Of a stretch of 64,000 nt of DNA, positions 1 through 35,822 are shown in pieces. Made by a program: the position numbers and the translations under genes. Below the pieces are notes generated by a model that was given only the letters and a program-made list of their open reading frames with translations, was not told where the DNA came from and searched no databases. The DNA is from Paraphysomonas bandaiensis. Taxonomy: Eukaryota; Protista; Chrysophyceae. The stretch lies in NCBI GenBank assembly GCA_965644295.1, contig CBFFRP010000035.1:228122-292121 (forward strand). Reading direction: 5' to 3'. How positions within the stretch are numbered: the stretch's first letter is position 1; every line of letters begins with the position of its first letter.

Positions 1-1614
1 TCGATTACATTACTGTCAAAAAGTGTATTGTAAAGTATCTTCTTTCGTAAGTGACAACGTCTGCAGTTGTTACCCGCAAGAAATCTGGTAATGTAGCTGC
101 TCCTCTGTCTACTGTGGCGGCTATGCTTCCAGCACTTGGGCTTGGTAACGCTGCTCCTAAGCCCGCTGCAAGTAAACAATCGACTGTTGCAGCTGCAAAA
201 GCGCCGACCACTGCTGCAACGACAGGCAAGGTGGTTTCAAGTGGTAAGACCATAGCAGCCTCAACAGCGGCATCGAAGGGCACCCCTGAAAGGAATAAGA
301 GTGGTGAGATAAGACACTGTGAGGCACGCCTTTCTTTAGCCTTGTAGAATACGTATTATTGTCTGCATAGATTTATGAGATCTGTATACCGTTGATATCT
401 AAAGCTCTTTAACGTCTGCCCTATTTATATAGACAAAAAGTCGGCGGAATTGTCAAAACCTAAGGAGTCGTCTTCGAATGTTCCCGCTGCAACTTCTTGG
501 GCGTCAGCGGCCACTGGTGTGCAGCGTGGAACCTCAGGAAGCCCGGCGGCGAGTGAAAATGTGCCTATGGCTTCGTCAAGCGATTTAATTGATGGTGACA
601 AGGGGGACGGAGATGACGACAGGAACTCCTTGCCGGATAATTCATCATCACTTGCGGAAAATCAAAAAGCTGAAGTGCCACCTGACTCTGCTGTCGTCGG
701 GCCTCCTTCGGCCACGGGGGGTACTTCTAGTAGTGCACAGCAGTCTCACCCTGGCCAAAGTGTTCGCCAAGGAGATAACCTTGCATCTGGAAATGGCTCT
801 GCATCTTTCATGGGGAATCCGGGCATGCCACCACTTCATCCTCCATCTGGATCGAGTCATCATCATGGTGCGGCGTCGAACCAGAGCTCCCCATTAATAT
901 CCGGTATGTCCGGGCCGCCACAGGGAGCAAGGATTCTCACACCAGAAATGCAGGTACATACACGTAGATTTAACTGTCCAGTTGATGTTCTACGAGGTTG
1001 TATAAGTGCGTTTGGTTGAGGGTGTAAAATTTGTAGTGTAAAGTTTGATATGTACTGTCTGTAGTCTCTGGCTAATATGCTGAAAGTGTCAATGGCAACA
1101 ATTCCTCCTGCCGAGAGTAGTGACAGAAGTAGAGGGTACGGGCCTTCATGTGCTATTATTACCTTAATATTCTGCAATATTTATAGATACACCCCCAGGA
1201 ATCCCTACCCATGTCACCCCGCGTTTCCAACGCAACCACCATCTGTTATTGATAATCCAGCTTTATTTGATCGCCTTCCTGTGGACACCCTCTTCCTGGC
1301 CTTTTACTACCAGCAAAATACCCTTCAGCAGAATTTGGCTGCTAGACAGCTCAAAAAGCACTCATGGAGATTCCACAAGAAATACATGACGTGGTTCCAA
1401 AGGCATGAGGAGCCCAAGGTGACAACGGACGAGTATGAAGAAGGAACATACGTTTACTTCGATTATGAGAGCGGTAAGTGAGATTCGTGGCACTGTGGCT
1501 ATATTGTCATTTTTGTTGGTAGGGTGGTGTCAAAGAATCAAATCTAAGTTTACATTCGAGTACAGTTACTTAGAAGACGAACTGAGTCAATCCCAAGAAA
1601 AGAGCCATTCGTAG
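1..1614 (+). CDS. CNOT3: CCR4-NOT subunit NOT3/NOT5 (CNOT3-like), 3' portion, multi-exon; 5' end lies outside the window
   Basis: NOT-box motif LPVDTLFLAFYYQQNTLQQNLAARQLKKHSWRFHKKYMTWFQRHEEPK...YEEGTYVYFDYESG|WCQRIKSKFTFEYSYLEDE, preceded by a low-complexity linker; GT-AG introns; stop TAG at 1612-1614. Confidence 0.9.
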
Positions 1615-2331
1615 CACTCGAGATATGTTTGAAATAAAAGACAAAGTCATTGAAAGTTGAGGTGTATGCTTAGTAAATTCAACACTAGCTATAATGTTGT
1701 TGAAGTTGTGACCGTAGTTGTCAATATTGTTGACCCCGCTACTATTGATAATAAGACAGATCAAGCTAAATTATAGTCTAAGAGCTGATGTCGTTGTAGT
1801 TGTTACATACGAACGCTTGAATAATATATGGCGATTAGTCACTGACGATTCTCAGTATGATGATTGCGAAGGTGCAGTGGCTCTTATTTCATCGAAAATA
1901 TGTAAGTTGAGATTGGATATTGGATCTCCCGTTCTTGGCCTGGCTTAGGTAATTGGAAAACTGTTGTAGGTGGACATAAAAGCAATGCAGATATAGGAAT
2001 GAAAAATAGAATTTAAAGTCATGCATTAACACCAGTCGCGGAGGGAGGACGAGATAATATCCCTCCAATACAACACACACATTGTGCTACGTGTTACACA
2101 GAATTCTGCACAAATGTCCTTCTGATTAATAGTTTATAGAGAACATATTGCCCATACAAATTCTAGCAACTGATAACACAGCTATGTTGCACGCATGACA
2201 ACGATGGCATGAGAATGTTATGATCTTTGAGAAACAACAAAGTAACTGTGACTATTAACGCAGGTAGGTGATCAAGTCTTGAAAGAATTTACCTTAATTT
2301 ACGGTGGCCAAACAATCGCACATATGGAAGT

Positions 2332-3891
2332 TCACAACATCTTGGTGTGTTTTGAAATAGTCTTCGCGTAATAGGTTTCCAAATAGACTATTAGCCATGT
2401 CATAGAAAAGACTAGTGCACATATAAAACACTGGCTTCCACTTAGATCTAAGTGCATTGGAAGAACACCTTTTGTGCTGACAGCACCAGATTCAACTAAT
2501 GCTGCAAGATACAAAAGGATCAAAGCTATAAGAGATACGCGAACTGTTTCTAGGGTTGGGGCCTTGGAGTTGCCTTCGTTTATGAATCCAATGGACACTA
2601 GAGATATTACCGGTAACACACACTCCAGTAGAAGCCTCTCAAAGCACATGTTTTTGTGTGTCAAAAGAATGTGCAGCGCAGATAACAAGGTGAGTACAAA
2701 GTGTATAAGGCTATATGTCCGTAGAAGGAGCGAGGGCTTCCGGGTGCTACAGTACTTGATTCTCCCTGGTGGTGCTTTTCCTATGTGCGGTGGCAGCTGG
2801 GATGGGGCAGTAACAAGTAGATTCTGCGGCTGAAATACAATTGCGTGCTTTACTCTCCGTCGAAAGAGAACGCTTAGGAAACGTATCACTTTTCCTATAG
2901 ATCCATACTTGGTGGTAGGGCTCGCAGAGCTACCTGTGTCGTCGATATTGAGCATTCTTACCGCATGGGCATAGTTCGCATATAGAGGATTGAAACTGTT
3001 AAGTTGATTTCCAAGACCGTAAAAATCTTTCACTTCTTTTTCTTCTCGAAAAGTGCCAAACAAGCGGTCCCATATGATCAGTACGCCGGCGTAGTTGCAG
3101 TTCCCAGGGGGACGATGGTGCATGCGGTGATGTGATGGGGTGTTGAGTACAATTTCCAGAAATCCAAGCTTTCCTATCTGACCACCATCCCAACATATTA
3201 GCCAATTACGAATAGTGCCATCTGCATACCTGATCAGTGTGAATCCAAAACTGATATAGTGTATTCAGCTGGCTATGTCCTAGGAAGGCAGCAGGTGGGA
3301 AGCCTATGAAAGCAAGCGGCATATAGAAAAAGCGACTGTAAAGTGCCTGAGTCGTGCCTTGACGCAGCGCAGTAGCAAGATTATAGTACTCTCCTGAGTG
3401 ATGCACGGAGTGTCCAATCCACATGAAGTGATACTCGTGGGCAGTTCGATGCATCCAATAATACCCGAGATCTACTCCCAAAAACAGCGCCGCAAATACC
3501 CATGGAGACTCCACATCAATATTAAACATTCGCCAATGTTTATATATATAAATATAAGGAAACAGCGACAGGCCTCGCAACAACACATCAGTAATTTGCT
3601 GCACAATTCCCAAACTAATGGAGCAAACCGCCTCTTCGACGTTATATAGAGACCTCCGCCTGATATACGCCACAGCTGCACATGGAGTCACTTGCAGTGC
3701 AGTAAACACACACATCATTGTAACGCACCTGCCTCTGAGAATATCATGAGGAAGAAGAAGGGTATGGCGTTCGAGATGAAGGCTGGGACCCTGTCGACAT
3801 CTGTCACTGATAGAGATGAGGGGGACACTATGTAGAACATGGACCCTACAGGGACAATGAAATCATGCCACATATCCAGTGATAACTCCAT
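2332..3891 (-). CDS. AGMO: Alkylglycerol monooxygenase-like (fatty acid hydroxylase family) membrane enzyme, 3 exons
   Basis: His motifs YYWMHRTAHEY, HSVHHS, QFWIHT, HRMHH; NLATALRQG; NYAGVLIIWDRLFGTF; C-terminal TM helices. ATG at 3891. Confidence 0.85.
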
Positions 3892-4401
3892 AGCGCACTG
3901 TAGTGTAGCAGCTATGTGTGAAGTGTGTTGTATGTATGTGTGCGTATCTTCTGCCTGCTGTGCTGCAGCGTTATCTGCAGGCAGGTCCTGCTGCTGCTGT
4001 ATGTACACCTATATCCATACTCATAGATGCGCAGCAGTATTCCGGTGGATATCTACGTATCTACACTATGTATGGTATGAACATGCCGCAAGGATCTGCA
4101 GTATGCTCTGTGTAGTCTGTACGCTGTATTGGATTCATCCAGCGCTTTTTTGGTGAAGGAATTCCTACCAATTTTCTGTTTTCAGCAAGAAAACCCGAAT
4201 ATTATGCACTGTATCTATTGTCGTACTGTAGGTAGAGTATGTATTTGCACTATCAATCTGTCGAAAAATTGGTTTGATAGACCAGAAATACGTGCACGGT
4301 ATACCGCATGATCATGATATCCAGAGTGAGATGCGCGTGTGCTGTGAGTCATCGTGATGCGCTCTGCATGTCACTGCAGATCCAACTCGTCTCAGTGAAA
4401 G

Positions 4402-5742
4402 ATGTCATACAACTTCATATTCAGTACCACTAAGAGCATCCTCTATGAGCTGGGTTCATCAAGGAGGCTGGGAGGTCTTCTAAAGGGTTCAGTGAGTAGC
4501 GGGAGAGGGGGAGGGAGGGTGCTTCTGGTCACTGATAGGGGCATAGCTGACAGCGGACTATGTGATGGGTGTGTACAGGAGATGGAGAGGAGCGGGTATG
4601 AGGTAGACGTATACTCTGAGGTGAGACACACACATATAGAGAGACATGTGTACATAGAGTGAATGCATGTGTATATATGAGCCAACACAAGTGCTGCAGG
4701 TGATCGCCGATCCTCCTGAGGAGAACATAAGAGAAGCGGTGGATAGAGCCAAACAGAGGGGAGTGGTGGGTGTGGTCGGATTTGGTGGCGGTAGTTCGAT
4801 GGATGTTGCTAAACTAGTTTCATTTCTCTCTTCGAGTGAGTGCACACAGGACTTGTCAGACATATACGGTGTGGGTATGTGTAAAGGCAGCCGCCTACCT
4901 CTTATTCAGGTACCGACAACTGCTGGGACTGGAAGTGAAGTGACCCCAATATCTATTGTAACCACTGGTCAAAATGAGAAGAAGGGTATCGTATCACCTT
5001 TGCTTCTTCCGGACTGGGCCGTTTTGGATGGTGAGCTGACTCTCTCTGTCCCACCGAGCACGACCGCCGCAACAGGAATCGATGCAATGGTACACGCCAT
5101 CGAAGCGTATACAACTCGTTTGAAGAAGAATCCACTCTCGGATATTCTTGCTAAAGAGGCACTACGTTTACTCGGGGGAAACATACGGACAGTATGTAGT
5201 ACTACAGGTTGCAATGACGCTCACGCTCGTGGAGAGATGTTGCTGGGGTCTATGTATGCGGGAATGGCATTTGCCAATGCCCCTGTGGGTGCAGTACATG
5301 CACTGGCCTATCCCATTGGTACCCACTTTCACGTTCCTCATGGTCTCTCCAACTCCCTCATGCTACCGTAAGACTGTCAACATACAATTGACTTTGTATT
5401 ACTCACTTGTATTGGTGTATGTGCAGACATGTTTTGAGATTCAATTCATCTCGAGACGGAGGTAGTGAAAGGTGCGCAGCAATGTATGCGGAGCTGTCAG
5501 ATATTGTGTTTAATGAAGGGAGCAGTGGAGACGTATACGACAGGGCAGAACAGTTTGCAGTTCTTTTCGAGAAACTTGCGCAGGGGTTAAATATTCCGCT
5601 TAATCTGAGGGATGTGGGAATTAAAAGCACTGATATAAACGTTCTAGCACAAGAGGCAGTGAAGCAGACCAGACTGTTGCCTAATAATGCAAGAGATGTA
5701 TCCTTTGATGATGCATTACGCTTGTACGAATGTGCTCTTTAG
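4402..5742 (+). CDS. Iron-containing (group III) alcohol dehydrogenase, 3 exons
   Basis: GGGSSMD, PTTAGTGSEVT, DAMVHAIEAY, VHALAYPIG...HVPHG motifs; introns at ~4621-4699 and ~5368-5426. Confidence 0.9.
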
Positions 5743-5784
5743 ATTTAGTTCTTGATGATTATTGTTGGAATGCCTTGGTGGTAT

Positions 5785-5917
5785 AGTTATATATCAACCA
5801 TGGGTAATAAGAGGCTATATCGCCCCGAGCTCAAAATTTTAGAATGAGGGCGAAGAGCCCGAGTTTTAAAATTTAGACAAGGGACGATACTCCTCTTCCC
5901 TAGGTTAAATTGTAACT
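5785..5917. mobile_element. Short imperfect palindromic MITE-like element
   Basis: Ends agttatatatcaaccatggg / ccctaggttaaattgtaact are imperfectly complementary, with internal dyad symmetry; single copy in the window. Confidence 0.3.
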
Positions 5918-6202
5918 TATCCTCGTGATGTTGAAAACCAAATATCTAGATTGTATAGCTATTTGTAGCTTGCTTGCTCCATAAGAAATGAATAGGTGTT
6001 CCCTGATTAACATTAAGAAAAAAAGGAAAGCTCATTTTGTTTCAAATCAATGGTATATACTGTATGCTTTTAGGGAATAGCAGCTTCACTAGAATAAATC
6101 CGAACTAAAAAAAATCGCTACAACAAACGTACTCCTACCACAGGAGGATACTGAGGGAATAGCACCTGCGAGGTGTTGAAATTTGTACATAAGTGTGATG
6201 AT

Positions 6203-7124
6203 TCCTCAACAAAGTCGGACTTGCACCTTTCATGGTGTTCTGGGGGATTAGTACCGGAGATATTTCTCCGGGAAACTAAAGTGAACCGCATTAGATATAG
6301 TAAGCAGATATTGTTCTACACACTCGACAACGACGCCGTCTCCGGCAACTCTACCTATGCCCGAGGCCCAAACAGGGCACTGAGACAGCGCCACATTCAC
6401 ATTCCAACTCCCCACCCAACTCTCAGCCCACACACCTAGCACTGGGTACACTCAAGACCTTCCTACAGAACACAGAACCCCGTACCACCACAAAACCCTG
6501 TGGAGTCTCATCCCAAGGGGAGACCCCCTGATAACACGCGCCAGTGTGTCCTAGAACACACGATCATGGCGAAACTCACAGTCAACATTAAGAGCGGAAG
6601 TGGTCGCACCTTGGTGCTTGCGGCGACGCACAAGCAGCTTCTGTAGCGCTAAATAGTAGGATAATAGAGTTTGTGCTGATTAGTTATGGATATAATAGGT
6701 CTAAATAGTCTGTCTAGTATTCAACTAGCCACTACATTGGTGCAGATTTTTAACGCCTATTGCTAAATGATAAGACTTTCAATATATGCACACTCATAGC
6801 CAAATGCTTGTGTGGTACAAGAGACACACTTGTGTAAGATGTCTTTGGGCCTTCTTGACAAATAAACAGGCATCCGGCAATGAGGCCCACCTCAAGGGCA
6901 TCCGGGGTACTGGGCTGCCTACTGAAGTCAAACATCCGGGCTAGTTCATCTTAAGGACAGAGAGTGACAATGGTTGCATCTTGGTGCTTGCGGTGATGCA
7001 CAAGCAGCTTCCGTAGCGTGAAATAGTAGGATATTAGAGTTAAGCACTAGTTTGTTAATTGCTTTTTGCCACATTAGTTCTGACTCTTACACGCCTATTT
7101 TGCTAATAATCAGACATTTACTAC
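6203..7124 (+). mobile_element. SINE-like non-autonomous element (family A, copy A1), interrupted by a nested family-B insertion
   Basis: Head CCTCAACAAAGTCGGACTTGCACC, body and tail homologous to 42891-43398, 16246-16723 and 16920-17463; ends ...gacatttactac. Confidence 0.8.
6326..6788 (+). mobile_element. 5'-truncated non-LTR retroelement 3' fragment (family B) nested in A1
   Basis: TSD CACACTC (6319-6325 / 6789-6795); encodes a degenerate LGTLKTFLQNTEP...ESHPKGRPPD homologous to the end of the 32512-33717 ORF; carries the shared tail. Confidence 0.8.
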
Positions 7125-7827
7125 TGTCTTCCTGCTTCCCACTACCCAGATTACCGCGAGTCAGTGAAAATTACATATTTCTCTATTAATCAAGAGCATG
7201 TAGAGTACATTTGATATCATAAATATTGTCTGTGGTTTGGCTTATAATATTGAATTTTACTTGTAATAGCACAGTACTGACTGAATTACGTTAAGAGGGT
7301 ATATAATGAAATTGTGATGTTGTAGCACTGTGATTGTGGACGCCAACACCAAAATTCTGTTCTAAAAATTGTATCTTTAACAGCTACTATATTTTCAGTT
7401 TCTTTGTATAATTTTAATAGCTACTCCTATATTGTAGTCCTGTATATTCTGTATTTCATTGCTACTAGCGATAGACTTCAACAAGCTTCAAGTACGCACG
7501 TTGGAGTTGGTTGTAGTTCAATATTCGTAATAGCATAACAGAAAATACTAGGTGACAAAATTCTCTAAAATCTGCAGGTTTAGCTAAAGTACATTCACGG
7601 GCATATTTCAACTGCTCCACGAATATCAAATACCTCTCATACAATGTATAACAAGTTACACATAGCCATGAACTTCTAAAGCATAAGAATACAAGTACTA
7701 AAAATAGTCGTATTATCAAACATTACAATGAACACTAAATAATGTCATCAAATATAAATGGCACACACAGAACAAATCAGCTACTCTCTTGTGTCAGGAT
7801 AGCATGTATATACACTGCGAACTAGTA

Positions 7828-10800
7828 CTACAAGAGATATGGCTGAAATATGCGAGTAAACTCAGAGCAATTCACCATTTCATCGTCTTCCATGTCCATC
7901 ATTTTTCCAAGGATTGCATAACTAGCAACTTCAGGAATTTGAAGTGACTTAATTTTTTCGCGAAGCATTTTAACTGGAATAAACCCAACTACTTGCTCAT
8001 CGTAATACTCAAACAACGTTTCGAGGTCTGTTTCATTTAGAAAATCTTTTCCATATATTTTTCGCTTCGAAATTTCGTCTTGTACATATTTCAGTATCTG
8101 TTTCTGAACTTCTTTATTTGCATTGCTAAATACCACTGGAATGAGATCGTTAATCGTCAAATAACCTTGCTTATTGGTGTCAACACGATTAAATATCGTC
8201 CTTGCTTGTTGCTGACTTGTGTTTTTATTCAGTGATGTCAAAAAGTTGCACCATTCATCTGGATCGAGGTCACCGCTGTAATCAGCATCTACTTTTTGAA
8301 ATATTTCTAAAAAGTGTTTTACATCTGCCATCTTGTAGAAAGGGAGGAGTATCCTTGTAGTTAAAACCTTCTTTTGTGCAGAACTATCAGAAGCGCGGCT
8401 AAATGAGCTTTTAATCGCGATCACCAACTTCTTTTCGAGATAAGCAACGTTAGTTTGACTTGAACTCATAGTATTGCGAAATTTCGACTTCTTCTTAGAT
8501 GAGTAACTCTTCGGTTTTAATTGCCTGATTTCCCAGTCGGGTACACTACTGACCTCCGCCTCTGCAACTTTATCCATAAGACCTTTGATACGTTCCTCGT
8601 CGATTTTCAGGGCTCGCACTTCCTCGTCACACTTCATATTAGACGTATCTACAAAGTTTACTGTTTTGTTTGTGCTTTTCGTTTCTCTATCGCTCCCTTC
8701 ATCATCGTCGCCCATACTGGACGGCAAAGAAACCTCGTGCAGAGGAGGATCAAGCACGTGGACCAGACTCCCAACTCGCTTAATGTTGTGTTTTATACGT
8801 TGCACAGACACCACATGTTGAGCTCTTGCCTTCGAATATCGATGAGAATTTCCACTGAATTCAGTGTTTGCATGTTTATACATATCCTGCCACATAGAAG
8901 TGCCACAATTAACAACGTTAGACGCATACAACGTTGCCTACCTTTTGCTCTCCAAATCTGACTTCAGCGGCATTGACAGTGCCTAGAGTGGGGATTCGTA
9001 CTTTAGCAGACATATGTATGTTTCGTAACATTGTTTTTGGCATCGCCCTGTCGTACACTCGTACTTTATCATTATTACCGTTGATTCGTTGTAGAATTTT
9101 GTGTCCTTCCGCATCGATAAGGCCCTGCTGGTGACCTAAAGCAATTGAGTGTTCAGAAAATGCCGGAATCTCGTTGGGCACGATTTCCTCAGTCGTTGAC
9201 CACAATGAATGCATACTCTTTGTGGTCTTTTCAGAGCATGTGGAAGTTTGGGAACGCATCGAGGTCACAGAGGCCGATGAAACACTAATCGCATCTCCGT
9301 TAGCAGACTTTTTGCGGGAGCCATGTCGTGATAATAGTGGTGGAATCTTGGTTGGACTTTTCACATGATACGACGGAGATTTTGGCTTCAATTTACTAGG
9401 CGAAAGAGGGGATAATTGTGGAGCTGTAAAAGGCTTCAATTCTACTGGAGAAAATGAATCGCTCGAAGATCGTGCAGCAGGAATAGCAGTCAGACTACGA
9501 TGTTTAGTATCATCCATCTTCTCTAAGTCTTCCTCGTCGCTCCCAGCCACAGATGATGATTTGTGCACAAAATGACCCAAACCCTGGCTGAATTCATCTC
9601 CATGAAACGATGAGTTTCTCTCTATAGGGTTTTCCTCTTTGAGTCTGTGGGCAATGTTTTCATCTTCGGTTGAATCCTTAGGAGCACACAGTTCACGTAG
9701 CACTGACGCTCTGAAATGAGCTTTAGCAGCAGCTGCCTTCGACCTCTTCGTAACCTTCCCTAGACTCGAATCGTTCTTAGTCCGTAGCATTAACAGGTTG
9801 TTATCACCAGGCCCTGATCCAGCAATAAAAATGGAATTAATGGCCGCTTTCCTTCTGTCTAATCCTTTTTCAGGGGCAGGAGGCGGGGCATCTCCTACCA
9901 ATTCACGAACTAACTTGGCCGCAATATCTTTATGCGACTGGTTAATAGGAATTCGCTCCAGTATAAACTTCCAATTATCGTTTTCATCTTCTTCTTCGTC
10001 TATCATAGATCTAGCTTTCATACGCTCAGTAATATTAGGTAGTGGAAGCTCTCCAAGCATCTCATTGTCCATATTCCATATGCGATGATAGCCATCTAGG
10101 GAGACAGTTATAACACACCCATGATCGTGTAGAGGCACCACAGCCGGAATGATGTCAGAGTGCGCTTTCCATGCTCGAAGCGAATATTCAACAATCGGTG
10201 ACTCTTCCCCCACAATAGCGGTATTATTTGTGACAATATTAAATTGAGATTGACTTCGCTGCATCGTCATTTGCATTTCATGGAGTTGACGTTGTACTTT
10301 CGCATTCACCGCATCCTCCTCGCTTGCAGAGAGGTCTGAATCCACACTACTGTCATCGTCGTCAAATGTCTGAACGTTCTCAATGAAACTATCAGACAGA
10401 GCATCAGTATTTACGTTTTCATTACACTCATTACTCTCCAAATGTTTTGACTCCACGCTGCCTGGTACTGTCTTCGGGTCGCCCTGTAAAACATTAGAGT
10501 CATCGGATAATATCCCACGTTGTCTTGTAGCATTGGCTTTACTTATCAGAGTAGAAGCAGATGTAGGGAAGAGCTCTACAAACTTTTGTGAAGCTTCTTT
10601 TCGCAATCGCGATGCATCCCATACAATAAGATATCCCTCATCCGAAGTACCCACAAACAAGTCTCCTAACTTGATACTGTTTCTTGAGTTGCTTGACGAA
10701 TAGTTCACCGACCCATGGGGAGGACAGTGGAGTAGTGTCATTCCATTTATATATACTGTTGATGAATGGCGTAGTGAATGCGTGAGAGCAATCCTGAACT

Positions 10801-27683: not shown

Positions 27684-28951
27684 CAGTAATTATATTGTTA
27701 TGGCATGAACATTCCCAATCACTTATCGTTGATATACTGTTATTTCCCATGCGCTTTGTCTGAATGCTTTTAGTCTGTAATATATATGTGATAACAAAGT
27801 ATCAAAATAGTTACTTGATTGGAGTATGTGATATTGTATTGCTAATGTATAAATTCCCTTTATTTGACCTATGCTTAGAAATTATCCTGTAAAAACAACA
27901 ATAATTACATTAGCAGAGCTTGAAATTGTGAATTTAGTTTTAGCTTACGGAGATTGCTCTCTAGCCATCACTTCACCAAGAAGAGTAATCGGAATGCTGT
28001 CCTTTTATAGGTCCTGTTATACACGTTTGATGTGTGAATGCTCCAGATGCTCACTAAAGAACTAACGCGAACTGGAAAATCAGTAAGAAAGTATGCCAAA
28101 GGAGACTTAAGGATGTTTCAACAAAGAAAGTCCAAACTTTAAGACCTCTAAACAACATGGAAAAGAACTTCATTCCGAAATCGATTCCGAAGCATCAACA
28201 CTGATCATAAACTGTGTGAGCCACATCCCGACCAATACGAGCCTTTCTGTCTGCGCTTGAAATTGCTCTAGACCAAGACATGTATGACAAAGATAGAGAG
28301 TCAGTTCGAAGTGTTGTCGATAATGGCTGTGATTCCCACAAGGTCATCAAGATACTGGGGCAAGTTAGTATCATAGAGATATGATATCGCAGATATGATA
28401 TATTAGATTATTGTGCTTCATAGAGATGTGACTGTAAAGGCATTCAACTTCATTTGACAAGTTTGCGGTGCTCTATTTCGTCAACAATACAAAGTCAAAA
28501 TGGTCCTCCTGTTGTAATGTCTTTACTCAGTTCTTGAACACGGATATCTTCAATCTGAACTGCCTCTCAACATATCACCCGTCCAACTGAAATAACATGT
28601 TGTTTATAAGGGTATTCCCCATTCCTTCTCTTGAACTCTAATACCGTAAAAAACGCATTCATACTCACAAGCCAGTTCAATATGACCCTGTCGTGTTTGA
28701 TATTAACATACTTAACATTCTCGACAAAGTTCAGCCCATCATACGAACCGTCCATATCAGATACGTCTTCATCGCTGTCACTGTCAACATCCTGAACATT
28801 CAAGCCCCTAGTCAACGTCATAATCAGTTATAATATGTGTTTACGTTAACTACATTGGTCTTCTATACAACGAGCTTCCAAGAGTACATTGTGGACACGC
28901 TGTTTTTTTTTGTAGTATTTTTTTGTGTCTGCCTGTACGACGAACAGCAGT

Positions 28952-29307
28952 CGTAGAGCTAAATGATGATTCGGTATAGAAGTCTTCGAGTGATGGAAAT
29001 GAAAGTCAACGTGCACATTCGTTTTTGTTACAGTGATTATGTTTTCAGTCATTGTACATGTGTGACTCTGTAGGATACGAGTGAGAGTGTACAGTAGAAC
29101 ATGATCAGCTGTAGTATTATTGTGTTGTAGGGAGACACCATAATTTCCTATCACTAACGATTTCTGTAGTATTTGCAAAGAGACTTGTCTTTTGCCTACC
29201 TGTAGTGTAGTTTGAACGGAGGACAACGGGCGCACTGGATCCGTTAGTGTTTGATTGATCTGTAGTATCAGTGTTGTATTTTCGATCCAAGTACGTATTT
29301 CTCTACG
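28952..29307 (+). repeat. 5' LTR (CGTAGAG...CTCTACG)
   Basis: Direct repeat of 35212-35567; 7-bp terminal inverted repeat. Confidence 0.95.
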
Positions 29308-29322
29308 TGATAGGAAATTATG
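29308..29322 (+). promoter_or_regulatory. Putative self-priming primer-binding site TGATAGGAAATTATG
   Basis: Exact reverse complement of LTR-internal CATAATTTCCTATCA (29139-29153); no TGG-type tRNA PBS present. Confidence 0.75.
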
Positions 29323-32277
29323 AAGAAGTCGAGCAACGAGAAGCTCAAGAAGTTTAGGAACAAGGCGTTGGACCAGCGGTCCAGGGGCCAAGGGGCAGAG
29401 GCATTGACCCCAACGGTGCCGATTCTGAAGTATGGGACGAACACCAACCTGGCGGTATTTAAGCAGAAGCTCACAGTGGCCGCCATGATGCTATTTGGTG
29501 ACCTAGCGAGGCTCGTGGAGACCGATGAGTATTATGAACCACCCAAGATAAAGATTGAGGACTACGATCTCGACAATGACCCCCACGGTCTGAACCTGGA
29601 AGAACTTAAGGATGCGAGAAAGACACGCCAAAGGAAGATTGACCAAATGCGTGACAACCGATCAGCTTTCTATGCGTTCATGTATGACAGACTGAGCAAC
29701 GAGTCCGTGGACGCGATTAAGCAATTGGAGGAATACGAAGAGATTAACTCCTCCAAGGACCCTCTACTGTTGTGGCTTGCTATCAAGCAGACTCACAAAA
29801 CAGCGACGAACTCCAATGTAGGGACCATCATGCGTGCAGAGACGAGAAAGAAGTACCAAGACGTGCGTCAGGGTCCATTTGAGAGTATAGTGGCCTATAA
29901 GGAGCGTTTCGATTTTCTTTTGGAAGCGTACAATGATATGGAGAATCCGAAGATGGAAGAAGAAGATATTGCTATGGACTTCTTCAGGGGTCTGGACGAC
30001 ACCAGATATGAGGAGTTTAAGACCAGTTTTATGAATGACTTAATGATGGGTACACAGAAGCCACCCAAGCACGTGAACGAGATCTACACTAAAGCTTCGA
30101 AGTATATCACCCCGAAGAGAGGAGCGAAACCTAATGGTGGTGTTGCGTTTGTGAGCAGGAAGGACACCTCGACTAAACAACAGCGTCGCACAGGTGATGC
30201 TGATGACAAGACGAAGTCGAATGGGACCGACGAGTCGAAAGGAAGCGTGCGAAAGCATAGAGGCCCTATTGTATGTTGGGGTTGTGGAAAGACTGGACAC
30301 AAGCTAAACCAGTGTCAAGAGAACGTCGAACCAGAGGAGAAACAATGCTCAGTGACTATGCAGAATGCGTTCACATCGGGAGGAGAGCGTTTCGAATGGT
30401 ACGAAGTTCTACTAGACAATCAGGCGGATGTGTCCGTTGTGCACCCGTGGCTACTGACAGATGTGAGACCTGCCGATCGTAAGTGTAAAGTAGCTGGCTT
30501 GTCTGGTCACGCAGTAGAACTACCCAATGTGGGAGAGCTGCCACAATTCTTCACATGTAAAACCGCCGACAACCTACGAGTCAGTGTGTTGTGCCAAGCT
30601 GATGTGGAAGATCTGTACCCTATTGTGTACGAGCCAGGAGTGTCATACACGGTGTGTCTACCTAATAGAGAGCTAGTGTTCTACAGACGGAACAAAATGT
30701 ATATAGCTGATATGAGGGATTGGGTGACACAAGGCAGGGTAAATATTACGACAACAAGAATGAAAGAACAAGAATACACTAAAAGCGAAGTGATGAGAGC
30801 TCGAAGGGCGCTGGAACTTGTACGGAACGCGGGTTTCGACTCAGAGCAGGGAGCCATGAACCTTGTGAGCGACGGAAATGTAACAGACGTGCCGTTGACG
30901 GCGCAAGACGTGAGGCGAGCTTTCGACATATACGGGAAGCCTTATGAAGCGGTTAGGGGGAAGACCACTAAACGTAAGAGCGGTAGGCAGTACATGGACG
31001 TGGGGATCAAAGCAGATCAGGCCAAGCCGCAACGTTTGTATACCGATATATTCAGTGTGAGAAAACAACCGTTCCTGATAACACTGTCCGAGCCACTGGG
31101 GTTGACTCTTGTATCTCCGGTAGCTAGTGAGAGGACTGATGATCTAGGTCTAGCTTTTCAGGAGCAAGTATCTCTACTAAGAAGTCATGGTTTCGCACCA
31201 ACTGTAGCCTATCTGGATCCGCAGCCTGGTTTCCAACCCCTCAGAGGACAGATTACAGGGGTGGAAGTGGATGTGTGTGGAGCAGGGGATCACATGGACA
31301 AGGTAGATCACAAGATCCGGAGACTGAAAGAGACTATTAGATCTGTGCAGGCAGGATTACCCTGGTCACTGCCTGATAACATGGTCAGAGATCTGGTGAA
31401 GTACTCAAACAGTCGCCTAAATATCAGAAGGCCGTCTACAGGCACATCCATAGTAGCGCCACGAGTAGCGTTCACAGGGAGGAAGCCTAACTACCGAAAG
31501 GAACTAGAGCTAGCATTTGGTGACTACGTGGAGTGCTACAACCCAAAGGTGCGAAGCAACGATGCCGAGCAAAGTCGCACTGAGCCGTGTATTGCATTGT
31601 ACCCTACTGGAAATGCCAACGGTAGCTGGTTTTTCATGAATGTGAAGACACACAAGCGAGTGAGAAGGACACACTGGGTGAAAATGAAGACAACGCAGCT
31701 CATAATTGATGCGATAAATCAGATGGCGAAGATGGGTGATACGACTAGGAAGAGTCAGATTCCGAACCCACTCCTACAGACGATAGAAGCAGAAGAGCAG
31801 CAGAAAGGCGAAGACATGAAGGAGAGTACGCCAGAGGACGTTAAACAGACTCCAGTTGCGGAAACAATAGTGGAAGATGTATCTACTACTGTGGTTGATG
31901 TAGAGCATAGCGGAAACCCACTAGGTCATGACGGTGATAATGAAGGTGAAGTGCCAGAACTTGTCGATGAGGAGCTGGATGACGATGTACCAACTATAAA
32001 GTCCGGCAGCAGCATTACAAGCAGTGACGAGACAGGCGTTGAGAACGACAGGTCGCCGGATGCGAAGTCGAAACCAGTAGAGTACAGGGCCTTTCACACG
32101 AGTGCGATGAAGGGATTGCGTGAGTATGGTCCACCGGCATATAACGCTATCATATCGGAGCTGAAACAACTTTTGCATGACAAGAAGGCTATGCGTCCAG
32201 TACACCGCAAAGAATTATCGGCAACACAGTTGAAGAGAGCTATTCGATCTCTGATGTTTCTCAAGACTAAGTATGAT
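29320..32277 (+). CDS. Copia gag-pol, 5' part (Gag CCHC, protease, integrase, start of RT)
   Basis: CWGCGKTGHKLNQC zinc knuckle; LLDNQA protease; integrase YTDIF...LDPQPGF...VDHKIRRLKE; the frame continues after the insertion as FLKTKYD|GLGRFEKIKARLVANG. Confidence 0.92.
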
Positions 32278-33785
32278 GTAGTGAATGTCTGATTATTTAG
32301 CAATAGGCGTTGAGACCTTGCATCAATTAGTGGCTAGAAGAATGCTAGTCATACTAGTTAGACCACTACCCGTAACTAATCAATACAAACTCTTTTATCC
32401 TACTATTTAACGCTACGAAAGCTGCTTGTGCGTCGCCGCAAGCACCAAGGTGCAACCACTTCCGTTCTTTTTGTGTGATATGAAATTCGCCTTTATCGTG
32501 TGTCCGTGGACTCACCGGCGCTTTTGATCTGGGGGTCTCCCTTTGGGATGGGTCTCCATTGGTTTTGGAGGGGGCTCAGCATTCTGAATTAGGGTCCTGA
32601 GTGCACCTAGGTCCGATTTGCTGGGTCCGTCACCGCTGTTATCGGAGGAGAATTCCTTCCCCTGAAGGGCGTGGGAGGGATGGTTGATGGACCTGGCACG
32701 GTGGACTCCTTGCATTCCCTTGGAATGACATTGCAACACATTTTGGAGACGCATGATGACAAGGTCAGGAATTCTCTCGAGTAGCGCGTGTAGTTCCAAC
32801 TCCACCGGGTATTTGGTGTCCAGGAAGAAGTGATCGTTGGAGCAAAACACATCATAAGATGGAAGGAATTGAGTTTGTGGAAGGAAGGAGGAATGGTGGG
32901 TGGACCAGTACGCCCAGTAAGGGAGAGGCGATAGTTTGTCCGGGGGTTTTCTAGGAGGAGGTAGAGTGTACTGTGTGTGTGTATGACACTGCAGTGGTGT
33001 TATGAGTGTGTTGGACAGAGAGAGAGAGCTGGTGATGTGTCCAACAGTACCGGTATACAGGTACATGGACATGGTGATGTGTCCAACAGTACAGGTATAC
33101 AGGTACATGGACATGGTGATGTGTCCAACAGCAGTAGAGGTATACACGGAATGGTATACATCCTGTAGGACACAGTAGTACAGTAGTCGAGTAAACCGTA
33201 TGCGGAATACAGTGTCTATCCAATGAGATGGATGGGCTGTGGGGGTGATAGGTGAACAGGGTGAGGGGGTAGCCTGCTGGGTGGATGGACCACAGACAAA
33301 CCATGTTGGGTTGGGCTGAGTGGGCGGCAGAAGGCAGCCCTGTTGCACAGTTGAGAGGGATCGAGAGTATTCAGTGATTGCATAGGGGGTCCATGGGGGT
33401 CGTTTTCGTGAGCCTGCTCGCACGAGCCATGTTCTGAGAGGTTGTAGCCGTAGAAAGCGATGGGTGAGACGAAGTTGTCTGCTGAGGGGATAGCACGTAG
33501 GTGCGGTCAGCGCTGCATTGGTGCAGGCACGTGGTTTAACTGAAGTAGTTGAGTAGGGTGAAGGTTGCAAGGCCAGGCAGGGGGGCTTGGAGCGTGTACA
33601 ACATGGTGTGACAGGTAATTTGTCGGAAGCGTGGTGGTCAACAAAATGCAGCAGTAAGGGAGTGTAAAAGGCCCTGGGCACACTGATGTGACTCAGCCAC
33701 AGTCTCAATAGAGACATTGGGCTTGGAGCTGGTTAATAGAGTGAAACTTTATGTTGGACTGTATTTGCCATCGTAGGGCAGAGAA
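32278..33785 (-). mobile_element. Non-LTR retroelement (family B), 1.5 kb, inserted in the Copia RT
   Basis: TSD TAAGTATGAT(G) at 32268-32277 / 33786-33795; 3' tail ...gacattcactac shared with the other copies; carries a 401-codon ORF. Confidence 0.9.
32512..33717 (-). CDS. Family-B element ORF of unknown function, ending ...HPKGRPPDQKRR
   Basis: 401 open codons; the C-terminus is conserved at protein level with the 6440-6545 copy; frame-preserving 42-bp tandem repeat; no RT or endonuclease motif recognised. Confidence 0.5.
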   Translation of the reverse strand: MSLLRLWLSHISVPRAFYTPLLLHFVDHHASDKLPVTPCCTRSKPPCLALQPSPYSTTSVKPRACTNAALTAPTCYPLSRQLRLTHRFLRLQPLRTWLVRAGSRKRPPWTPYAITEYSRSLSTVQQGCLLPPTQPNPTWFVCGPSTQQATPSPCSPITPTAHPSHWIDTVFRIRFTRLLYYCVLQDVYHSVYTSTAVGHITMSMYLYTCTVGHITMSMYLYTGTVGHITSSLSLSNTLITPLQCHTHTQYTLPPPRKPPDKLSPLPYWAYWSTHHSSFLPQTQFLPSYDVFCSNDHFFLDTKYPVELELHALLERIPDLVIMRLQNVLQCHSKGMQGVHRARSINHPSHALQGKEFSSDNSGDGPSKSDLGALRTLIQNAEPPPKPMETHPKGRPPDQKRR

Positions 33786-33795
33786 TAAGTATGAT

Positions 33796-35226
33796 GGCTT
33801 AGGGCGCTTCGAAAAGATAAAAGCAAGACTGGTAGCTAATGGCGCACAACAAGATAGGAAGGTGTACGTAGACACATCGTCACCGACAGCAGCGATGCAG
33901 TCGATTATGATGTGCCTGGCGATAGCTGCTAAAGAGGGACGTCACATAGGTATCATGGATATAGGAGGCGCTTACCTGAACGCCGAGATGTCTGGCGAAG
34001 AAGTCATAATGGAACTAGAGCCAATGTTAACAACGATATTGAAGAAAGTGGCTCCTGAAGTATCACCGTATGTTGATGAGACTGGTAAACTACTAGTGCG
34101 GCTGGACAAGGCGCTATACGGTTGCATCCAGAGTGCAAAACTCTGGTACAACACGCTTACAGGATATTTGAGAAGTTTGGGATTCGAGCACAACGCGGTC
34201 GACCCATGTGTAATGAACAAAGTAGCTGGCGGGCGAAAGTGTACAGTGGTGATATTTGTGGATGACATACTGGTCATGTCAAGCCATAAGGGCGACTACC
34301 TAGAGTTGCTTAAGAAACTGAAAGAGAAGTTTGGGGATGTAAAGCACGACGATGGGAAAGATCTGTCATATCTCGGAATGCACATTAGAGCAGAGGGAGA
34401 TAAGGTGACAGTGTCCATGAGATCGTACATCGAGAATTTTCTACGAGAACACGGAGTGACAGGAACTGCTACATCACCTGCTACAGCTACTCTATTTAAG
34501 AACACCATGGACAAACCCACTAGTAAGAGTGATAGAAGGAAGTTTCACAAGATGGTGGCTCAGTTGCTGTACCTGGCCAAAAGGGTTAGACCAGACATAC
34601 TGCTTGCAGTCGCTTACCTTAGCACGAGAGTCAAGAATCCGACGCATGCTGACATGGAGAAGCTTGGCAGGGTGACCCGCTACCTGAACGCGACTAAGGG
34701 ACAGGACTTGTTGCTGTGCATTGGAAAGAATCTTACCATTACTGGATACGTCGATGCGGCATTTGGGACTCATGACGATGGAAAGGGTCATTCGGGTCTG
34801 GTCGTAAAGGTGGGGGATGCAACAGTACTCTGCAAATCGTCGAAACAGCGCATTGTGACACGTGACTCGACGGAATCAGAGTTGGTAGGTCTATCAGATA
34901 TGTTAATGATGATTGTGCAATGTGCAGAATTCATAAAGGAACAAGGATACAGTATTGACGCACCTAGAGTGTTGCAAGACAATACCTCGACTCTATCTCT
35001 TGTAACGAAAGGCGGAGGCAAATATCGTACAAAATACCTGCGTGTGAGGCGTGAATTCATCAAGGAAAGGGCAGATGAAGGAAGCATTCAATTGGAGTAC
35101 TTGCCCACAAAGATGATGCTGGCTGATGCATTGACGAAGCCCCTCCAAGGTACTCTGTACAAGTTTATGACATGTGGTATCGTGGGAAACAATACACATG
35201 CCACAGGGGTGCGTAGAGCTAAATGA
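33796..35226 (+). CDS. Copia pol, 3' part (RT + RNase H)
   Basis: KARLVANG, MDIGGAYLNA, KALYG, IFVDD, YLGM, YVDAAF, STESELV, QDN, ADALTK; the stop lies inside the 3' LTR. Confidence 0.93.
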   Translation, partial: GLGRFEKIKARLVANGAQQDRKVYVDTSSPTAAMQSIMMCLAIAAKEGRHIGIMDIGGAYLNAEMSGEEVIMELEPMLTTILKKVAPEVSPYVDETGKLLVRLDKALYGCIQSAKLWYNTLTGYLRSLGFEHNAVDPCVMNKVAGGRKCTVVIFVDDILVMSSHKGDYLELLKKLKEKFGDVKHDDGKDLSYLGMHIRAEGDKVTVSMRSYIENFLREHGVTGTATSPATATLFKNTMDKPTSKSDRRKFHKMVAQLLYLAKRVRPDILLAVAYLSTRVKNPTHADMEKLGRVTRYLNATKGQDLLLCIGKNLTITGYVDAAFGTHDDGKGHSGLVVKVGDATVLCKSSKQRIVTRDSTESELVGLSDMLMMIVQCAEFIKEQGYSIDAPRVLQDNTSTLSLVTKGGGKYRTKYLRVRREFIKERADEGSIQLEYLPTKMMLADALTKPLQGTLYKFMTCGIVGNNTHATGVRRAK

Positions 35227-35567
35227 TGATTCGGTATAGAAGTCTTCGAGTGATGGAAATGAAAGTCAACGTGCACATTCGTTTTTGTTACAGTGATTAT
35301 GTTTTCAGTCATTGTACATGTGTGACTCTGTAGGATACGAGTGAGAGTGTACAGTAGAACATGATCAGCTGTAGTATTATTGTGTTGTAGGGAGACACCA
35401 TAATTTCCTATCACTAACGATTTCTGTAGTATTTGCAAAGAGACTTGTCTTTTGCCTACCTGTAGTGTAGTTTGAACGGAGGACAACGGGCGCACTGGAT
35501 CCGTGAGTGTTTGATTGATCTGTAGTATCAGTGTTGTATTTTCGATCCAAGTACGTATTTCTCTACG
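35212..35567 (+). repeat. 3' LTR
   Basis: Matches the 5' LTR; preceded by a short purine-rich ACAGGGGTG and followed by TSD GCAGT. Confidence 0.95.
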
Positions 35568-35574
35568 GCAGTAC

Positions 35575-35588
35575 TGTATGTATATATG

Positions 35589-35620
<32 letters not shown>

Positions 35621-35822
35621 TGTATTTTTGTATGTATGTATGTATGTATGTATGTATGTATGTATGTATGTATGTATGTATGTATGTATGTATGTATGTA
35701 TGTATGTATGTATGTATGTATGTATGTATGTATGTATGTATGTATGTATGTATGTATGTATGTATGTATGTATGTATGTATGTATGTATGTATGTATGTA
35801 TGTATGTATGTATGTATGTATA
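35575..35822. repeat. (TATG)n microsatellite
   Basis: Directly visible tetranucleotide array. Confidence 0.98.

Follow-up and report, generated by a model that had tools for sequence, protein, structure and literature searches.

A young Ty1/Copia retrotransposon from a clade that probably primes minus-strand DNA synthesis with its own RNA

The window (the whole 64,000-nt stretch of DNA that was analysed) carries an LTR retrotransposon on its plus strand, bounded by two copies of the 5-bp target-site duplication GCAGT, one at 28947-28951 and the other, formed by the 5 nt that follow the 3' LTR, at 35568-35572. The 5' LTR (28952-29307) and the 3' LTR (35212-35567) are direct repeats of 356 bp each, with ends of the form CGTAGAG...CTCTACG, and they differ by a single base. 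Between them, an ORF at 29320-32292 encodes Gag with a CCHC knuckle, protease, integrase and the start of reverse transcriptase (RT), and is ended early by a foreign insertion. The remaining RT and RNase H follow at 33782-35226, as placed by Pfam RVT_2 and by alignment to the intact relative L036, and a polypurine tract (CACAGGGGTG, 35202-35211), found as the same motif in related lineages, abuts the 3' LTR. Intact copies elsewhere in the genome have a single ORF of 1464 aa. The insertion, delimited by the same alignment to L036, occupies 32279-33781, splits the RT gene and is accompanied by a target duplication of ~10-11 bp (TAAGTATGATG); because of these 1503 bp in the RT region, the window copy is non-autonomous. 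The inserted sequence is a multi-copy repeat, with at least nine full copies in the genome at 96-100% identity, plus longer and shorter relatives. This repeat family is very young and unrelated to the Copia element; Pfam recognised no ORF in the 1503-bp repeat, and we noticed neither a poly(A) tail nor terminal repeats in it.

Pfam RVT_2 matches the window at 33751-35226 (E = 1.8e-30) and residues 973-1212 of P0001, the protein of an intact relative (E = 8.5e-31). The integrase of P0001 was not recognised by sequence searches of Pfam, including the rve family, or of the PDB. An AlphaFold model of P0001 residues 545-815 (pLDDT 85.7) matches the catalytic core and C-terminal domains (CCD+CTD) of retroviral integrases (Foldseek E down to 1.8e-10, probability 1.0), and residues D576, D633 and E671 are invariant, or nearly so, among 31 relatives. 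The model thus indicates that residues ~545-815, and with them the same region of the window ORF at 29320-32292, fold as a retroviral-type integrase core followed by an SH3-like C-terminal domain. With an integrase fold upstream of RT, the domain order is Gag-PR-IN-RT-RH, which is that of Ty1/Copia. The element therefore belongs to Ty1/Copia (Pseudoviridae), as defined by its RVT_2-type RT, integrase before RT, LTRs, 5-bp target duplication and polypurine tract. A tRNA-type primer site, typical of Ty1/Copia but not defining, is absent from the window element, and its LTR ends are not the canonical TG...CA. Membership of the Tf1/sushi clade of Ty3/Gypsy was considered and ruled out by the position of integrase before RT and by the RVT_2-type RT, as opposed to an RT-RH-IN order.

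A preliminary description of the locus had pointed to a self-complementary sequence next to the 5' LTR, and its letters and coordinates proved exact. The sequence TGATAGGAAATTATG at 29308-29322, directly after the last LTR base, G29307, is the exact reverse complement of 29139-29153 inside the LTR, and the pair C29154:G29307 lengthens the duplex to 16 nt without a mismatch. One arm is thus an LTR-internal segment (CATAATTTCCTATCAC, 29139-29154, plus strand), of which the 3' LTR contains a second copy at 35399-35414. The other is the primer-binding site arm at 29307-29322 (plus strand), which consists of the last LTR base and TGATAGGAAATTATG and contains the gag ATG at 29320. As had also been noted, TGG does not follow the 5' LTR; the primer site starts TGA. 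The pair 29139-29154/29307-29322 is the sole inverted repeat of at least 9 nt within 28900-29400 (501 nt), and a search of the window for the 15-mer finds nothing beyond the two LTR copies and the complementary primer site. When the LTR was shuffled 20,000 times, no complement to the post-LTR stretch exceeded 13 nt, as compared with the 16 nt observed; the analytic expectation is ~5e-7. When RNA corresponding to 29139-29330 is folded, its 5'-terminal 16 nt are base-paired to the post-LTR stretch in the minimum free energy structure and in the centroid structure alike, enclosing a loop of 152 nt. The RNAalifold consensus predicts a second helix inside this loop, between AGAGA at 29179-29183 (plus strand) and TCTCT at 29300-29304; both sides are invariant in four families, such that covariation neither supports nor refutes this helix. 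The TATTAT that had been reported upstream of 29139 is present at 29116-29121 (plus strand), 18-23 nt upstream of 29139 and 18-25 nt upstream of the proposed transcript start, where it may serve as a TATA-like box. It is kept in family B (L031) and not in the other lineages, and conservation in two families only makes it a weak candidate for such a box.

Relatives of the element were collected by an RT search of the genome (62.5 Mb in 669 contigs) and by a protein search with the integrase region, the latter returning marine metagenome proteins and one MMETSP protein. The relatives within the genome are L031 (77% RT identity) and L032 and L033 (61%). The others, L036-L044 and L088, come from marine metagenomes, a JGI draft assembly and one NCBI assembly, and range from 98% to 36% identity in the integrase region. 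Two more distant sequences, L034 (42% RT identity) and L035 (31%), showed no LTRs within the stretches retrieved for them and were left out; what lies upstream of L035 belongs to another repeat. All 11 lineages, which span 36-98% integrase-region identity, have their own perfect duplex of 14-16 nt between LTR and primer site, in the same register and with eleven different sequences. The partner segment lies inside the LTR, 56-152 nt upstream; pairing starts at the LTR-terminal G (in L043, with CG). For the window element, L031, L032, L039 and L043, the LTR end ...CG was read from both LTRs and from target duplications (GTAGA, CATAC, TTGGT and GGTTG in the relatives), and in these five the duplex reaches 13-15 nt into the internal region; in the remaining lineages it was placed by the common ...CG/T junction and the polypurine tract. 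Eleven of the 14 aligned pair positions are variable, yet every pair remains Watson-Crick, which requires at least 20 compensated changes. For four families of this genome, RNAalifold returns the same helix, with 4 pairs changed on both sides. The preliminary description had proposed to look for compensatory changes among family members and relatives, and had named loss of the complementarity in related intact elements as the outcome that would refute its reading; the opposite was found, with the duplex kept in ten further lineages despite their different sequences. The most distant element examined, L087 (26% identity), has only a 12-nt, AT-only complement located 3 nt from its apparent LTR end, an ambiguous case that counts against self-priming.

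The LTR ends are CG...CG across the clade (L031, L032, L039, L040 and L043), with integrated 3' ends of ...ACG and a conserved polypurine tract. In LTR retrotransposons generally, 3' ends of ...CA are near-universal. The CG...CG termini may be linked to the geometry of self-priming, or they may reflect a divergent integrase.

The family to which the window copy belongs offers a view of the same pairing on a shorter time scale. The genome contains at least 14 further copies of the 5' LTR plus leader at 98.5-99.4% identity, and one more at 94%. The only polymorphism in the segment is C/T at 29147, the only common polymorphism after the LTR is G/A at 29314, and these two positions are exact pairing partners. 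Across 17 copies, counted from the alignment, a genome-wide pattern search and a metagenome contig (which contributes one T:A copy from another sample), the combination is C:G in six and T:A in eight, with a C-A mismatch in two and a U-G pair in one. The last three copies, in which the polymorphic position is mismatched or forms a G-U pair, are a point against self-priming. The segment type is always identical between the two LTRs of a copy. Among 23 informative sites, 29314 has the second-highest r2 with 29147 (0.37), and the value is ~0 for most of the others; the family is a recombinant mosaic. Such a pattern is expected if the primer is copied into the primer site in each cycle, with occasional mixing of co-packaged RNAs of different subtypes, and the partner polymorphism within the family would, taken alone, be moderate evidence for self-priming. 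Another point against self-priming comes from runs X1 and X4, which contain an LTR variant without 29068-29199 (132 nt), and hence without the segment, that is still joined to the primer site and gag. This variant is absent from the assembly of the window genome. An antisense intron was considered as the source of the 132-nt skip, whose CT..AC ends correspond to GT..AG on the minus strand, and was rejected; a deletion between direct repeats of CTGTAG fits better, given the 6-nt overlap and the probable DNA origin of X1.

The 5' edge of the segment carries the dinucleotide CA in all 11 lineages, five of which have the full motif TCA-H-W. Relative to the 14-nt core, CA lies directly upstream in nine lineages, and in the other two the core begins at the A of CA. 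For diatoms, TCAH+1W has been put forward as an initiator-like motif (PMC4686930); in oomycetes the initiator reads YCAYTYY, and transcription begins at the A or beside it (PMC3599244). The U3 sequence upstream of the segment has diverged between families and the sequence is conserved from the segment onward, as expected at a U3/R border. From the conserved CA motif and its agreement with the diatom consensus, we infer that transcription starts at CA/T 29140-29141 (~29139-29141). Of the words sampled from the queried sequence, 31-41% occur in assembled contigs of poly(A) marine metatranscriptome libraries. One such contig reads PPT-U3-R-U5-gag, which is the join expected in an assembly graph when two RNA ends are connected through their shared R. 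We rejected this contig as evidence for the start or the poly(A) site, because contigs cannot show RNA ends.

The preliminary description had also asked for a search of the host tRNAs for complementarity to the primer site. Primer sites of the clade begin with T(G/A/T)A and not with TGG. Searching the genome for the 14-mer of the primer site returned no exact match outside copies of the element. Matches with one mismatch occur elsewhere in the genome at the level of a reversed-pattern control, and none of them falls within the 63 tRNA genes scored by Rfam RF00005. Forty of these 63 genes, representing 30 unique sequences and 18 anticodon types, were compared with the primer-sense strand after addition of CCA. 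The best match was 7 nt, which is at chance level, with shuffled primers matching equally well or better. A different picture emerged for the most abundant Copia in the genome, which we refer to as family D (31% RT identity; G000:C1:182600-190100, L085 and L086). It has an ORF of 1651 aa, 258-bp LTRs, the target duplication GGGTT and a TGG-type primer site (TGGCAGCGGATG), and its LTR contains no stretch of 8 nt or more that complements that site. We did not find a tRNA partner for TGGCAGCGGATG in the partial tRNA set, and family D is for this reason a contrast rather than a positive control. Since family D has no LTR complement, the signature characterises the clade and is no general trait of the genome.

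The register of the pairing, its covariation in 11 lineages and the lack of a match among the sampled tRNAs support the reading, put forward in the preliminary description, that this Copia lineage self-primes. We consider it likely that the young Ty1/Copia element in the window, which the later insertion of 1.5 kb has disabled, belongs to a clade whose minus-strand DNA is primed by the element's own RNA and not by a tRNA. We propose that transcription would start in the LTR at CA/T 29140-29141, and that the first ~14 nt of the RNA would fold back over a loop of ~150 nt to pair with the post-LTR sequence. A cut by an enzyme of the RNase H type at the 3' edge of the duplex, most simply after A29153, would presumably free a 3'-OH opposite T29308. 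Reverse transcriptase would extend this end, copying U5 from G29307, and copying from that base first would explain why the LTR ends exactly there. Strong-stop DNA would then be transferred to the 3' R. Plus-strand synthesis would later copy the RNA primer and so re-create the primer site, such that the primer site of the following generation would inherit any change in the LTR segment. A cut after A29153 does not account for the additional, conserved C:G pair formed by the last LTR base; cleavage may instead occur one base further on, in which case a single ribonucleotide would stay attached to the DNA. More speculatively, the duplex over the gag AUG may also restrain translation of those RNAs that are destined for copying.

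We weighed four alternatives to this model. That the inverted repeat arose by chance is extremely improbable: the AT-rich composition of the LTR is all that favours it, and it is refuted by the shuffles, which never reached the observed length, together with the recurrence of the repeat, with covariation, in 11 lineages. It is also very improbable, and close to refuted, that a host tRNA, a tRNA half or another small RNA is the primer and that the LTR complement is a coincidence or a mimic. Copia-type elements do use tRNA 3' ends or half-tRNAs as primers (PMC6317226), and the sampled tRNAs represent 18 anticodon types only. Nonetheless, the 11 lineages have 11 different primer sites, each matching its own LTR, which tRNAs cannot explain; moreover, the site has no initial TGG, its 14-mer is confined to the elements, and the best tRNA match is no better than those of the shuffled controls.

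The two other alternatives accept the pairing and assign it a different role or a different partner. The Ty1 leader and retroviral leaders contain long-range pairings even though these elements are primed by tRNAs, and the duplex described here could likewise be a structural or regulatory RNA element, involved in leader folding, in dimerisation or packaging, or in hiding the AUG, with another molecule acting as primer. The duplex does cover the gag AUG in the window family and in family C, and the transcript start is a prediction from conserved motifs. On the other hand, all 11 pairings begin exactly at the junction of LTR and internal region, which is a need of a primer and not of a regulatory helix; the AUG lies outside the duplex in several lineages; and the sequence after the LTR contains no alternative tRNA-like site and no match above chance to the sampled tRNAs. 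We therefore regard a purely regulatory role as improbable. Equally improbable, if not slightly more so, is self-priming from the segment copy in the 3' LTR or from a co-packaged second RNA, with transcription starting downstream of 29154 and the 5' segment belonging to U3. The copy at 35399-35414 is transcribed in any case, and the mixed C/A and T/G copies indicate exchange between two RNA subtypes. A cut at the 3' copy, however, would strip R and the poly(A) tail from the RNA that has to serve as template once strand transfer has taken place, and a start at the 5' copy is favoured both by the CA initiator-like motif, which marks the precise 5' edge of the segment in all 11 lineages, and by the onset of conservation at the segment, as expected for R. 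Beyond the model of self-priming from the 5' end of the RNA, a broader scenario can be formulated. In it, self-priming would be ancestral and universal in a large, ocean-wide clade of diatom-type Copia elements and tied to their CG...CG ends; the primer site would be re-templated in each cycle and evolve in concert with the LTR; and the duplex, by hiding the gag AUG, would switch the RNA between being translated and being reverse-transcribed. We offer this combination tentatively, and think it rather unlikely that all of its parts hold.

Copia elements dominate diatom genomes and are stress-induced, and we know of no description of how reverse transcription starts in them. Self-priming has been demonstrated experimentally for the Ty3/Gypsy elements Tf1 and Tf2 of Schizosaccharomyces pombe; in Tf1, nt 1-11 of the transcript anneal to the primer site, and RNase H cleaves just behind them (PMC7175516). 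It appears to extend beyond Tf1 and Tf2 to the Tf1/sushi group, all of which are Ty3/Gypsy. As in these elements, the primer site after the 5' LTR of the window element complements LTR-derived RNA of the element itself at its proposed 5' end, has no complementarity above chance to the sampled tRNAs, and keeps its pairing among relatives with different sequences. Unlike Tf1, the window element has a Copia architecture, with integrase before an RVT_2-type RT, and a duplex of 14-16 nt rather than 11 nt; the pairing in its clade always includes the last LTR base, the termini are CG...CG, and the start and the RNase H cut are predicted from sequence.

Among Ty1/Copia elements, self-priming has been predicted from sequence for the plant TAR lineage (Houba, Osr-1) (PMC6317226). 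The window clade resembles TAR in belonging to the Copia superfamily and in having a predicted self-complementary primer site in place of a tRNA site, and differs from it in its occurrence in marine diatom-type genomes and metagenomes, its single ORF of ~1460 aa and its CG...CG termini. The CoDi elements of diatoms are Copia elements of ~5 kb with 5-bp target duplications that are young and transcribed (Maumus et al. 2009, PMC2806351). Their primer sites were not described in that paper, which reports TG/CA termini for 23 of 26 families (PMC2806351). The window family shares with CoDi elements the length of ~5 kb, the 5-bp target duplication, the young age and the presence in poly(A) marine metatranscriptome libraries, and the CG...CG ends of its clade set it apart from the TG/CA of most CoDi families. 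In the fungal GalEa elements, also Copia, a "Conserved Hairpin Site" replaces the primer site; it is a short palindrome, for which no LTR complement was found (PMC5445492). GalEa and the window clade both lack a tRNA-type site and have a conserved local RNA or DNA structure in its place. By contrast with GalEa, the site in the window clade is not palindromic, and it has a perfect LTR complement 56-152 nt upstream.

The preliminary description had contrasted self-priming with the tRNA priming typical of Copia elements. Within Copia as a whole, self-priming has a precedent in the prediction for TAR (PMC6317226). Our search for reports of self-priming in diatom or stramenopile Copia covered full-text literature, with subscription journals outside its scope, and returned none. 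As far as we checked, the mechanism itself is known, and what is new is the lineage, its marine breadth, the longer duplex and the CG...CG ends. If the model is correct, this would be the second or third independent lineage to use the Tf1 strategy, here across a whole marine Copia clade, and it would bear on the idea that hairpin-based or self-priming is old among LTR elements (PMC3601003). Such a tRNA-independent start would also account for the failure of primer-site finders based on tRNAs to annotate these elements, and the complementarity between LTR and primer site offers a simple sequence marker by which active copies can be found and dated. With a family that is young (at least 14 copies at ~99% identity) and present in poly(A) libraries, the prediction is testable in culture.

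Lastly, we note several features of individual copies and of their surroundings. In one copy in the window genome (L017, G000:C463:116418-122738), the match spans the LTR and nt 1-13 of the primer site, gives way to ~5.8 kb of other DNA, and then restarts 10 nt earlier in the query, indicating an insertion or rearrangement exactly at the primer site. In L040, a contig of NCBI assembly GCA_040384245.1, positions 1-9347 have a head-to-tail arrangement of ORF, 315 nt (polypurine tract, one LTR and primer site) and ORF, with units that are 99.5% identical. Either the units lie in tandem and share single LTRs, or circular or concatemeric forms have been assembled into this array. The 361 bp to the left of the 5' LTR in L041 (1622-1982) are repeated to the right of its 3' LTR (7541-7901), which is without its last 5 nt; L041 is a rearranged or tandem-context insertion. 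The 3' LTR of the related Copia in L042 contains a Tc1/mariner-like transposon (6734-8308; DDE_3, HTH_Tnp_Tc3_2) with inverted ends of ~25 bp and a TA duplication. The window copy itself lies 8 nt from a long (GTAT)n microsatellite (35575-35820), the family-C copy L032 lies within (CATA)n, and TGTA-rich flanks are found at other copies (5' flanks of L009 and L013); such contexts may reflect an insertion preference for these repeats.
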